Shown piece by piece: positions 48,673 through 51,987 of a stretch of DNA of 64,000 bases (the stretch's first letter is position 1; the number at the start of each line of letters is the position of its first letter). The position numbers and the translations under genes were made by a program. The notes below the pieces were generated by a model. The model was not told where the DNA came from and did not search any database. It saw nothing but the letters and a program-made list of their open reading frames with translations. Location of the stretch: the sequence record NC_062582.1; one strand, 5' to 3'.

Positions 48673-49320
48673 TTAACCTACCCGTACTACGATGGTATCG
48701 TTATTGAAAGTTTCACCAACCCAACGGTTGAATGTATGATCTGTAATACCCTGATAATTCAGTGTAAAAGAAGCGTCGTCTACAAGAATGTATTTGATAG
48801 TCGATGCCGGTGTATCGATATATTTATCCCAAAGGTCATCCGTATTTCTGATTACATCACCTTTGTTATGGAGTACCACTGGATATAAAGAACCATTCTC
48901 ATGCACCGCGACTTTTAATGTCCCATCTTCATTACGATCATAAATTGTTTCTTCATAGGTCTCTACTTGACGATCTTTGATGATCTGATTAAGTATGCCT
49001 GAATTCATGTAGTGTCTCGGTAAGATAGCATTTGTACGCTTCACAAACTTCTCACCGATCACTTTCTCGATAGCTCGATCCTTACAGATGAACAATACTT
49101 CATCAACTCCGTGCTGTAATGCAAAATCTACAAGAGCATCGGTTTTACCACATTGTCTACCAACATAGAAACCAACCGTACGGTATTCCCGAACATCCGC
49201 ATGGGGTGGGTTTCGTGCATGGAGTCGATGTATCCAGTTCTCTTTTGTCTTGTCAATAAGAGCTTCGATGATTGAAGTATAAGCTACTTGAATTTTTGCT
49301 GGTGTAATAAAGTGATTCAT
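48673..49320 (-). CDS. stand-alone P-loop NTPase-like protein (terminase/helicase-type Walker motifs)
   Basis: VGFYVGRQCGKT and YILVDDA. Confidence 0.55.
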   Translation of the reverse strand: MNHFITPAKIQVAYTSIIEALIDKTKENWIHRLHARNPPHADVREYRTVGFYVGRQCGKTDALVDFALQHGVDEVLFICKDRAIEKVIGEKFVKRTNAILPRHYMNSGILNQIIKDRQVETYEETIYDRNEDGTLKVAVHENGSLYPVVLHNKGDVIRNTDDLWDKYIDTPASTIKYILVDDASFTLNYQGITDHTFNRWVGETFNNDTIVVRVG

Positions 49321-49389
49321 GTTAATTACCTTTTATTTCAATAAGTGCCCAATTGCACATATAGTGTCATGCCGGGTAATTATTGTAGA

Positions 49390-49417
49390 CGGCATAAAGC
49401 TCTCCTTGCGGAGAGCA
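49390..49417 (-). terminator. terminator downstream of the tRNA pair
   Basis: Reverse complement GCTCTCC-GCAA-GGAGAGC-TTTATGCCG. Confidence 0.8.
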
Positions 49418-49428
49418 CTATATTTGTT

Positions 49429-49517
49429 TGGCGGAGAGATAGAGATTCGAACTCTAGGGTCCCGATAGGACCTGCGGTTTTCAAGACCGCCGCCTTAAGC
49501 CACTCGGCCATCTCTCC
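49429..49517 (-). tRNA. tRNA-Ser(TGA)
   Basis: GGAGAGA acceptor, GCGGT-CTTGAAA-ACCGC anticodon arm, long variable arm, GTTCGAATC, encoded CCA. Confidence 0.95.
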
Positions 49518-49522
49518 TTATT

Positions 49523-49608
49523 TGGTACGGGATGCGAGACTCGAACTCGCACGCTCTAAGAGCAACAGATTTTAAGTCTGGTGTGTCTACCGATTCCACC
49601 AATCCCGT
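49523..49608 (-). tRNA. tRNA-Leu(TAA)
   Basis: ACGGGAT acceptor, CAGA-CTTAAAA-TCTG, variable arm, GTTCGAGTC, encoded CCA. Confidence 0.95.
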
Positions 49609-49614
49609 GAATGT

Positions 49615-50210
49615 GTCCAGCTCGTGAGATTGACGCCTCACTATAATTGTAGATCGCCGCTGGCGAAGCTTTTCATCCCTAAGTAAAGCCTACCCTGACG
49701 GCAACCATTTGGTCGCTAGAGGGAAAACCTTTTCATAGGGTCTATCTACCTTACTTACCTCTACATGGCTTCAGTACGATGGAGGGCAAGTAAATTGAAT
49801 TCGAGAGTAATCCACTTAAATACTTGGCAAACACATGCTCTTGTTAACCTGCATGCTGCTATCTAAGTCATTACTGTGGTCACGTGTATGGTCCGTGCGT
49901 ACCGCCTTTCGGCGCGTGCTCTTTAGAATGGTTGGTAGCAGGTACGGGACTATCACCTTCGTGGTTTACCTTTCCAGGTAATTCCCTGCTTCCGGTCGTA
50001 CACCTGGTACGAACAGCCCTTCTTCTCGCTTCAGGGAATGGCGTGACCTTTACAGAGCTATCCGTTTCAGCCATTTCTTCATAGGGGTGGGTCGCGGTTC
50101 CCTCGTCCATAGAGCTATAGCTCGATCTACAAATGTCTAAGGGTTGAGTAGGCACACCTATTTGACCACAGGTTAGTGGGTGCCTTTTGCTACACGGGAA
50201 GGTTAGTTCT
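49615..50210 (-). ncRNA. candidate large structured ncRNA (~595 nt) containing a 23S rRNA H18-H20-like module
   Basis: No credible ORF/RBS; many perfect hairpins; 10-bp long-range helix (50123-50132 with 49647-49656); directly upstream of tRNAs on the same strand. Confidence 0.75.
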
Positions 50211-50233
50211 CGTATACTATTACTATCTCAGTA

Positions 50234-50410
50234 CTATTTAACTGAATTACCGAACTGATCTTGGCTAAACCTTTTCAACATAGCTTCACGTACAGGACTT
50301 GGAATGTAACCTTCCAGTGGAATACACTCATCTGGTGGTGTTGGATGAGTCAGTGATTCGTCTACCCAACGTTCCGACAGTTTAACTAAGGCTTCTTTGA
50401 TCTCGCTCAT
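50234..50410 (-). CDS. hypothetical protein (58 aa, MSEIKEALVKLSERW..., not in track)
   Basis: Read manually; ATGA overlap with the upstream ORF. Confidence 0.55.
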   Translation of the reverse strand: MSEIKEALVKLSERWVDESLTHPTPPDECIPLEGYIPSPVREAMLKRFSQDQFGNSVK

Positions 50411-50670
50411 TCCGTCTTCCTTTCCATACGGATCTCTATGTCAATACCTTCTTTAAAGATAAAGTTCCAGGACTGTTTAACATGGTTATGTACCACATGT
50501 TTCAGATAAGGAATCGCTGTATGCAATTGTTGATACAATTCAAACTTAGTAATCGCTGTATTACCAAAGATATTTTTGATTGCTTCATCCGCATGTAACG
50601 CAAGGCGTGCAGTACTCAATGACTTATGGACTTCACGGTTTTCTTCGTAGACACTGGTTAGTTTTTTCAT
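50407..50670 (-). CDS. hypothetical protein (MKKLTSVYEE...)
   Basis: GGAAAG SD before the ATG at 50670. Confidence 0.6.
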   Translation of the reverse strand: MKKLTSVYEENREVHKSLSTARLALHADEAIKNIFGNTAITKFELYQQLHTAIPYLKHVVHNHVKQSWNFIFKEGIDIEIRMERKTE

Positions 50671-50683
50671 ATTATCTTTCCTA

Positions 50684-51145
50684 TTAAGATGCGAGGATAA
50701 CAAATGTATCGATACCAAAGTTATTAGCAACCCATTTGTAAAATGTCTTCTTCTTGCATCGACCATAGGTAAAAGCGGAGTCAGCATCTTCAAGGATGAT
50801 GTACTTGTAGCGTTTGGAACAAATTGCAAATTCCATTGGGATGGTGTGGATACGACGTGGGCCTTCAATAGTCAAATGACGCATGGCATTGTCTGGAATA
50901 TACCTCGACAGAAATGCATACGTATCATCATTCTTAGGAATAACCAACGTATCTGGATGACGCCTTACCCATTCTAAAATGAAAGCACTCTTACCCATGC
51001 CTCTACCGACGTGGAAACCTACTGACTGGTATTCACGGATAAGGTAATCAATTGGACGATCATAATCACCCGCGTCTTTGATATTTTGAACGACCACCGA
51101 TTTAGAATCGAGCATACTCTGAATAAAATCTACAAGTTTTGACAT
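50684..51145 (-). CDS. stand-alone P-loop NTPase-like protein, paralog of 48673..49320
   Basis: REYQSVGFHVGRGMGKS and YIILEDA. Confidence 0.55.
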   Translation of the reverse strand: MSKLVDFIQSMLDSKSVVVQNIKDAGDYDRPIDYLIREYQSVGFHVGRGMGKSAFILEWVRRHPDTLVIPKNDDTYAFLSRYIPDNAMRHLTIEGPRRIHTIPMEFAICSKRYKYIILEDADSAFTYGRCKKKTFYKWVANNFGIDTFVILAS

Positions 51146-51222
51146 GATTGTTGCCCTTTAATAGTGAAGAACGAAATTGTTCTACATATGGTCTACAGCC
51201 GAGTAAAAGCTTTAGACGGTAT

Positions 51223-51248
51223 AAACGGAAACCCGAAGGCTTCCGTTT
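51223..51248 (-). terminator. terminator after tRNA-Asn
   Basis: Reverse complement AAACGGAAGCC-TTCG-GGTTTCCGTTT. Confidence 0.7.
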
Positions 51249-51253
51249 AGAAT

Positions 51254-51329
51254 TGGCTCCGAGACCAGGGTTCGAACCTGGGACCAACGGATTAACAGTC
51301 CGCTGCTCTACCAACTGAGCTATCTCGAA
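51254..51329 (-). tRNA. tRNA-Asn(GTT)
   Basis: 76 nt; AGCTCAGTTGGTAGAGC D arm, CGGA-CTGTTAA-TCCG anticodon arm, GTTCGAACC, encoded CCA. Confidence 0.95.
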
Positions 51330-51390
51330 TGAATCTCTTTAGAGTTTGTATACTCTTACATAATATTACACAAAATCAACGACTTAACTT

Positions 51391-51987
51391 CTATGGACGA
51401 TAACCGTCAAGTACGCGTTCTACAAACACAGGGCAGATCTCACGGATCACCTTCCAATCAAGTGCACGATAACGCCATGCTTCTACTGTGGTACTGATCA
51501 CACGTTCATTGTTATCCAGTGATGGTGCGATACCTTGAAGTTTATGTTCTTTGAAACCTTCCAACCGATCATCGCGTTCTACAAACTTACCGATGATTGA
51601 CGAATGGTTTTCCTGGCGAAGGTCGTAGTTGTCAATGGCGTAAATTGTAAATTCGCCTTCGGTACCTCTGTAGTACTCGAAGTAACGTGCATACGACACG
51701 ATGTTGTTAAGTAGGTTATTGCGAATATCTTCACGCAGAGCTACCGATTTAGCAAATTCGACATGTTTACTATGGATGTAATGAGTCGCATATTCGGACT
51801 GGTCCAGTTCTGTTTTGTTCCAAACAATCGTCGAATAGCAGATACTTACATCATCAATAAAAAACCTTCGACCAGTATCGGTATCTACAATGGTACCGGC
51901 TAATTCATTACCTTCGCGATCAACGATGATCACGGTCTTACCGGTGTCTTTATAAGTCTTGTAAAAAACATCATCAAAATAAATCAT
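51391..51987 (-). CDS. hypothetical protein
   Basis: GAGG SD, 198 aa. Confidence 0.7.
   Translation of the reverse strand: MIYFDDVFYKTYKDTGKTVIIVDREGNELAGTIVDTDTGRRFFIDDVSICYSTIVWNKTELDQSEYATHYIHSKHVEFAKSVALREDIRNNLLNNIVSYARYFEYYRGTEGEFTIYAIDNYDLRQENHSSIIGKFVERDDRLEGFKEHKLQGIAPSLDNNERVISTTVEAWRYRALDWKVIREICPVFVERVLDGYRP

Follow-up and report, generated by a model that had tools for sequence, protein, structure and literature searches.

The Pseudomonas jumbo phage Phabio (NC_062582; 309 kb genome; host P. fluorescens SBW25) encodes, within its tRNA island, a large structured RNA of which one arm is shown, by covariance-model alignment and covariation, to be a faithful copy, in both sequence and predicted structure, of the Y-shaped junction formed in 23S rRNA by the tip of H18, H19 and H20, pseudoknot pairs included. 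Phabio is a PhiKZ-related jumbo phage possessing the nuclear-shell protein ChmA (PMC10643120). The window considered here is the whole stretch of the Phabio genome that was analysed, 64,000 nt (64 kb) in length.

The rRNA-like element is found on the minus strand, inside a 625-nt ORF-poor gap (49609-50233) bounded by a 58-aa ORF on one side and by tRNA-Leu(UAA) on the other. The large RNA lies on the same strand as the tRNAs of the island, with tRNA-Asn being encoded 1.6 kb upstream of the gap. The neighbours of the rRNA-like element are tRNA genes and hypothetical phage genes and not an rrn operon with 16S and 5S genes, and no r-protein gene was found next to the large RNA when the neighbouring genes were examined. 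The main features of the locus are as follows:

49609..50233, minus strand: Phabio copy of the large structured RNA, ~625 nt, its 5' end approximate and its 3' end abutting tRNA-Leu (ORF-poor gap, homologous gaps, consensus fold)
49934..49993, minus strand: rRNA-like arm, an outer helix bearing an H18tip-H19-H20-like three-way junction (covariance model R1, described below, Rfam LSU, unique pattern)
49617..49793, minus strand: most conserved 3' core (invariant blocks; the search pattern that recovered the homologues)
49880..50110, minus strand: annotated CDS gp468, hypothetical protein of 76 aa, overlapping the rRNA-like module (GenBank record)
49523..49608, minus strand: tRNA-Leu(UAA), directly 3' of the large RNA (ARAGORN and Rfam)
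49429-49517, minus strand: tRNA-Ser(UGA), after tRNA-Leu(UAA) (ARAGORN and Rfam)

The 23S rRNA-like arm

The resemblance to 23S rRNA had been pointed out in a sequence-only reading of the window, in which the minus strand at 49937-49990 was given as AGCAGG-GAA-UUACC-UGGAAA-GGUAA-ACCACGAA-GGUGAUAGUCCC-GUA-CCUGCU and set against a segment of E. coli 23S rRNA. The phage letters proved to be exact, and the segment quoted is the true E. coli 23S sequence (L045/L006). The outer helix proposed in the same reading is indeed present, although it is longer than was stated, since 49985-49993 (GGAAGCAGG) pairs with 49934-49942 (CCUGCUACC) with a single A.A mismatch. The arm comprises the following parts:

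49985..49993, minus strand: 5' strand of the outer (H18-like) helix, GGAAGCAGG (sequence and covariation)
49982..49984, minus strand: J18/19 junction strand GAA (sequence and Rfam LSU alignment)
49966..49981, minus strand: H19-like hairpin UUACC-UGGAAA-GGUAA (stem covaries among seven phage copies)
49946..49965, minus strand: J19/20 strand ACCACGA and H20-like hairpin AGG-UGAUAGU-CCC, including the equivalents of lone pair 319:323 and of pseudoknot pairs 317:334 and 318:333 (letters match the bacterial LSU consensus)
49943-49945, minus strand: J20/18 junction strand GUA (sequence and Rfam LSU alignment)

When compared with the H18(tip)-H19-H20 region of 23S rRNA (E. coli nt ~295-343), the phage element presents the same three-way junction, with GAA, UGGAAA, CCA.AGA, GGUGAUAGUCC and GUA unpaired, and keeps both the lone pair 319:323 and the pseudoknot pairs 317:334 and 318:333. 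By contrast, every stem base pair differs from that of E. coli, the junction is mounted on a continuous 9-bp helix within a phage RNA and not within rRNA, and position 325 is an A, yielding A:U or A.C where the rRNA has G:C. Moreover, one J19/20 nucleotide is missing in Phabio and in phage D6, and junction letters are altered in some copies. The bacterial LSU consensus (GGUGAuAGuCCcGUA, aCcAuAga) is a closer match to the phage element than is E. coli, and in Rfam LSU alignments, nearly all unpaired consensus nucleotides are matched (GAA, UGGAA, CCAUAGA, GGUGAUAGUCC and GUA).

The significance of this match was assessed with a covariance model, termed R1, for which the 23S segments of six bacteria (E. 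coli, Acinetobacter, Ralstonia, Sinorhizobium, Paenibacillus and Persicobacter) were used and no phage sequence. Searching both strands of the 64-kb window with R1 and with filters turned off gave a sole hit, at 49940-49987 on the minus strand (43.2 bits; E = 5.7e-13), the runner-up reaching 10.4 bits (E = 0.32). Likewise, a search of the window for GAA-N5-UGGAAA-N13-GGUGAYAGYCCCGUA, the unpaired nucleotides written as a pattern, gave a single match even when 3 mismatches were tolerated, and 100 dinucleotide shuffles gave none. Given the R1 score, the uniqueness of the pattern in the window and its absence from the shuffles, chance resemblance to 23S H18-H20 is excluded.

Alignment to an LSU covariance model, which the sequence-only reading had named as a check of its claim, was positive not only with R1 but also with the Rfam model LSU_rRNA_bacteria. 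The latter aligned to the Phabio copy at model positions 332-381 (20.9 bits; E = 5.4e-5; 131 nt searched) and to the corresponding elements of two related contigs, L013 and L015, at positions 330-384 (40.1 and 37.7 bits; E = 8.8e-9 and 5.6e-8, respectively), these last matches coming from a 50-kb search against all 4227 families. A repeat of the LSU search reproduced the alignment of the relatives, with L013 now scoring 34.7 bits. The gathering score of this model (RF02541; 50 bits) is not reached in the window. No LSU hit was returned when the whole 64-kb window or a 2.5-kb stretch of it (49000-51500) was searched, the speed filters missing the site, and the match was also missed in one 854-nt search (L013 5463-6316) while being found in other L013 searches. 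With Rfam cmscan, whether a short local match to the 2.9-kb LSU model is reported varies strongly with how the filters are set, and these misses reflect loss of sensitivity due to the speed filters, not absence of the element.

R1 recognised the element in seven phage copies, namely, those of L013 (45.4 bits), Phabio (43.2 bits), L015 (40.7 bits), L033 (36.9 bits), RVTF4 (34.4 bits), D6 (33.5 bits) and L023 (28.6 bits), with E-values from 1e-13 to 1e-7. In the alignment of these copies, 93.9% of the cells are paired, as compared with 27-44% in controls with slid partners, and changes on both sides are seen in 8 of the 14 pairs. All five pairs of the H19-like stem are changed on both sides, as are all three model pairs of the outer helix (four of nine in an extended alignment of five copies). 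The equivalent of 317:334 is paired in each of the seven copies, appearing as AU in two, GU in three and GC in two, and the equivalents of 318:333 and 319:323 are invariant C:G pairs. The 325:337 pair is A.C in four of the seven. Thermodynamic folding alone gave modest z-scores, from -1 to -3.

Conservation is not uniform along the arm. J19/20 and the H20 loop are nearly invariant, whereas the H19 loop and both H18-side junction strands drift somewhat, with UGGAAA, UGGAAU, UGAGAA and UUAGAU being found in the H19-like loop, GAA, UAA, AAA and AA at J18/19, and GUA, GUG and GU at J20/18. Indeed, at certain junction positions where all six bacterial sequences agree, the nucleotide is varied or deleted in phage copies.

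Because compensatory changes occur in every stem and in the tertiary pair across seven diverged copies, comparative sequence analysis shows the arm to be under selection for structure. That the module is common to Phabio, the deepest branch among its relatives, and to other clades points to selection rather than decay. The LSU alignments and the covariation together bear out the proposal of a junction mimic with compensatory stem changes.

It was also considered whether the arm could be a neutral relic of captured rRNA or part of a coding gene. Pieces of rRNA are sometimes carried by phages and by RNA-virus assemblies, and a relic of 23S domain I had been listed in the sequence-only reading, together with domain-I-like words upstream of the arm (GAGGGAACCG at 50095-50104 and CUGAAAC at 50064-50070). 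These words, however, take no part in any alignment to the LSU model, and the homologues do not conserve them. Only ~55 of the 2925 LSU model positions are matched by the phage RNA, the likeness being limited to the H18-H20 unit, and the rest of the 625-950-nt RNA matched no rRNA region when compared with the LSU and SSU models. With its stems under structural selection and not decaying, the arm does not behave as the captured relic once suggested. As to coding, the GenBank record does annotate gp468 across the module, but the frame is not conserved, no match to gp468 was found in PHROG, and the equivalent region of L013 contains no same-strand ORF of at least 50 aa. Furthermore, a 1-nt indel within the module between homologues would shift the gp468 frame while RNA pairing is kept, and the corresponding gap is unannotated in Psa21, D6 and RVTF4. 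The coding reading was rejected, gp468 probably being a gene miscall. Taken with chance resemblance, the relic and coding readings are effectively excluded, such that we consider any of the three to be very improbable.

The large RNA and its homologues

Homologues of the large RNA were sought via the neighbouring Fe-S protein, with DNA patterns from the conserved core, and by blastn. Ten homologous regions in total were found, every one in genomes or contigs (~300 kb) of Phabio-like, nucleus-forming jumbo phages, namely, Phabio, Psa21, D6, RVTF4, the IMG/VR contigs L013, L015, L032, L049/L052/L053 and L023 together with L019, and L033 (from a metagenome). The homologous gaps in the nine other phages span 706-949 nt, as compared with 625 nt in Phabio. 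A scan of metagenomes yielded one real homologue (L033) and two chance matches, and no copy was found in ~186,000 bacterial and archaeal genomes, where four chance matches were seen in unrelated genomes.

In all ten homologues, the RNA is situated in a tRNA island with tRNA-Leu(UAA) immediately 3' of it, and in several, tRNA-Trp or tRNA-Ser precedes it. This constant arrangement suggests that the large RNA is co-transcribed with the tRNAs and that its ends are set by tRNA processing. As such, the RNA would be made within the tRNA-island transcript, with its 3' end being generated by RNase P at tRNA-Leu. Other genes are also encountered in these islands. An HNH endonuclease gene comes right after tRNA-Leu(UAA) in Psa21 (L002 3924-4646) and D6 (L046 2295-3017) and not in Phabio, and the Psa21 island holds a polysaccharide lyase family 7 gene, with an ORF of the same size being found there in L013 and L015.

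RNAalifold analysis of six copies returned 104 consensus pairs, 37 of which display compensatory changes, with long-range helices connecting the 5' and 3' regions. Long invariant blocks are common to the homologues, mostly in the 3' third (alignments A1 and A3). The 3' core contains a hairpin (49750-49793) with the loop CUCCAUC..CUGAAGC, the blocks GUAGAUAGACC, GGAUGAAAAGC and CCAGCGGCGAUCUAC, and a terminal hairpin (49624-49641). Apart from LSU, no Rfam family, including GOLLD, ROOL, introns, RNase P and tmRNA, matched the large RNA. Since the fold is conserved, Rfam is silent and the gp468 ORF is not conserved, the region is read as a previously unannotated large structured RNA, predicted to be non-coding. 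In L015, ~100 additional nucleotides at the 5' end (L015 6204-6310, as compared with L014 4990-5100) closely resemble the first domain of the Psa21 type, and this contig seems to contain two divergent tandem copies of the first domain of the RNA.

Among known RNAs, those closest to the large RNA include GOLLD and ROOL, which come from phages and prophages. In each case, the RNA is phage-encoded, exceeds 600 nt, presents extensive covarying structure and is positioned in or beside a tRNA island, and in GOLLD, as here, conservation is higher towards the 3' end than in the 5' region (10.1101/2024.12.08.627333). They differ in that the hosts here are Pseudomonas jumbo phages and in that an rRNA-like arm is undescribed in GOLLD or ROOL (10.1101/2024.12.08.627333). 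Membership in either family was rejected, as the Rfam GOLLD and ROOL models gave no match at E<=10 in Phabio 49000-51500 and the L013 gap or at E<=5 in L013, L014 and L015. Hence, the large RNA resembles GOLLD and ROOL in size, ornateness and tRNA-island site and is not detectably a member of either.

Other assignments were also considered and rejected. A group I intron was suggested by the words CAGACUA and GAUAGUCC in the relatives; no Rfam intron model matched, CAGACUA is lacking in Phabio, the upstream GAUAGUCC corresponds to the loop of a local hairpin that covaries, and tRNA-Leu(UAA), next to the large RNA, is intact. The sole group II hit was a weak match to D1D4-4 in the L013 gap (E = 0.74), overlapping the GGUGAUAGUCC word. 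Finally, an RNase P-like identity, raised by GGAAAGUCC, was dismissed.

The rRNA-like junction itself is found in seven of the ten homologues. In the remaining three (Psa21, L032 and the L049 lineage), where R1 found no match, the same outer-helix arm carries a plain hairpin. In a tree built from the large RNA minus the module, module-bearing Phabio forms the deepest branch and at least two changes of module state are needed, one of these within the well-supported D6/RVTF4/L049 clade. The simplest reading is that the module is old and was lost at least twice. Its loss on at least two occasions, with a simple hairpin in its place, identifies the rRNA-like arm as accessory, swappable and dispensable, and the plain hairpin of three homologues implies that the large RNA has a core function independent of the arm.

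Matches in other viruses

The module pattern was also used to scan 2.9 million viral contigs. Beyond the Phabio group, the first such scan returned two true 23S fragments (L004 and L006) and five collagen-like coding repeats, and a later scan returned three chance matches with no model match. L004 and L006 are short IMG/VR contigs ending in genuine bacterial 23S rRNA, that of L006 matching E. coli, and point to rRNA contamination or host flanks in the viral collection. At the Rfam gathering threshold, L006 gave no LSU hit despite its true 23S sequence. In L003, L005, L007, L008 and L010, the collagen-like Gly-X-Y repeats match TGGAAAG..GGTGATAGCCCCGTA by chance, which calls for caution in searches based on motifs only.

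The only other real match outside the Phabio group was found in an ssRNA phage contig, L048 (IMGVR_UViG_3300009580_000537; 3187 nt), assigned to the Leviviricetes and encoding a maturation protein (Pfam Phage_mat-A) and a replicase (RNA_replicase_B). The first 79 nt of this contig correspond to a complete H18-H19-H20 domain (LSU positions 319-395; 52.1 bits with the Rfam model and 61.8 bits with R1), with the LSU alignment ending exactly at the base of H18 though the sequence continues. The element is followed downstream by a GC-rich hairpin; ten contigs of a relative with 58% identity start at this hairpin and are without the domain. An independent Logan contig (three samples) presents, in the 30 nt upstream of the hairpin, the same sequence as L048. 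Contigs L061 and L062 are likewise involved in the observation at L048 1-120. Either this RNA phage truly bears an rRNA-derived domain at its 5' end, or L048 is an assembly chimera. Were the domain genuine, the same piece of rRNA would have been acquired by two unrelated phage lineages, and this would favour a portable protein-binding function.

Possible partners and roles of the arm

Bacteria regulate r-protein synthesis through mRNA leaders, some of which are known to mimic protein-binding sites in rRNA. Like the autoregulatory leaders responding to L1, L10, L20, S8 and S15, or the uL4-responsive S10 leader, the phage arm appears, from its sequence and covariation, to copy the rRNA site of an r-protein. 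In terms of how it might work, the likeness is an analogy only, namely, that free r-protein could be captured. Unlike these leaders, the phage arm belongs to a large RNA encoded by a phage and not by the host, and is not situated in the 5' UTR of any r-protein operon. To our knowledge, no rRNA-site mimic has come from a virus and none is known for the uL24/uL4 junction, at which 50S assembly is nucleated, nor has the S10 leader been reported to resemble that junction. In the literature searched, neither this large RNA family nor viral mimicry of the uL24/uL4 site was found to be described.

In the ribosome, uL24, the first protein to join 23S rRNA, and uL4 have their primary site on the H18/H19/H20 junction; no other proteins interact with it specifically, and these two clamp its three strands (PMC6426284). 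Since the site of uL24 and uL4 in rRNA is a junction that folds by itself, the phage arm, by virtue of its predicted fold, would most likely bind whatever uL24 and/or uL4 is free in the host cytoplasm, a reading that we judge to stand at about an even chance. In such a scheme, uL24 and uL4 might be borrowed as clamps or cofactors, turning the phage RNA into a ribonucleoprotein. Alternatively, the two proteins might be titrated away from nascent 23S rRNA, which would perturb assembly of new 50S subunits as well as uL4-dependent regulation. Counting against binding of uL24/uL4 are the loss of the module in some lineages, the A.C at 325:337 in four copies and the modest folding z-scores, as well as the observation that the letters that drift, at J18/19, J20/18 and the H19 loop, belong to the strands contacted by uL24 (PMC6426284).

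That same pattern of drift at protein-facing positions, together with the better conservation of the internal tertiary core (J19/20, the H20 loop and the pseudoknot pairs), favours the main rival to uL24/uL4 binding. Here, the Y junction, rigid and able to fold by itself, would be reused to brace the large RNA or to provide a docking point as this RNA folds or multimerises, with no r-protein being involved. Such a role is feasible since the junction, an archetypal three-way junction, folds by itself and is stable without protein (PMC6426284). Moreover, the arm is peripheral and exchangeable for a plain hairpin, as a structural accessory should be, and RNA-only assemblies, such as the ROOL and GOLLD cages, are known for large phage RNAs beside tRNA islands (10.1101/2024.12.08.627333). 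Against this, an arm of the same fold would be expected to bind abundant free uL24 and uL4 anyway, and the two readings are not exclusive. We know of no case in which an rRNA junction of ~50 nt, with ~24 unpaired nucleotides identical to consensus, was reused for purely architectural ends, the sequence-level rRNA look-alikes of such size known to us so far being r-protein binding sites. Overall, an RNA-only role is deemed unlikely, if still a contender.

The arm could also act as a decoy or a handle, its target being a different factor that recognises this part of 23S rRNA, be this a phage protein, an rRNA-modifying enzyme, an assembly factor or a host anti-phage nuclease. A site in a tRNA island would fit a store of spare parts or decoys for the translation apparatus, paralleling the replacing or shielding of tRNAs, and PhiKZ-like phages, Phabio and Psa21 among them, invest in ribosome-directed factors, encoding proteins that target the 50S subunit (PMC10914614). 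Nonetheless, only uL24 and uL4 have been reported as specific binders of the junction (PMC6426284), and no candidate partner gene for such a factor was identified. A decoy of this sort is, accordingly, considered improbable.

Returning to binding of uL24 and uL4, precedents exist for contact between large RNAs and ribosomal components. OLE, a large structured bacterial RNA, binds the r-protein RpsU (bS21) through a pocket resembling that of the ribosome, and ribosomes are recovered in pull-downs of GOLLD (10.1101/2024.12.08.627333). OLE belongs to a different RNA family, binds a different protein, is host-encoded and is without rRNA sequence mimicry of such extent.

The finding joins two known kinds of element, namely, mimics of rRNA sites and the large ornate phage RNAs found near tRNA islands. 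Should the RNA-only reading be true, the arm would offer the first instance of a whole rRNA three-way-junction domain being reused in an unrelated RNA. It is, on the other hand, conceivable, at somewhat below an even chance, that phages (jumbo phages and maybe an ssRNA phage) captured the 23S junction as a portable protein-binding domain for binding host uL24 and uL4. If so, host ribosome biogenesis and regulation through uL4 could be throttled or redirected by the phage, or else the phage would gain a host-supplied clamp for its own RNA. The homologues with a plain-hairpin arm provide natural controls, and P. fluorescens SBW25 is a laboratory host that is non-pathogenic. Were the arm to bind uL24/uL4, it would represent a new, RNA-based phage route onto the host translation apparatus, would complement the known ribosome-binding proteins of PhiKZ-like phages, and would assign a function or molecular partner to one of the large ornate RNAs of phage tRNA islands.
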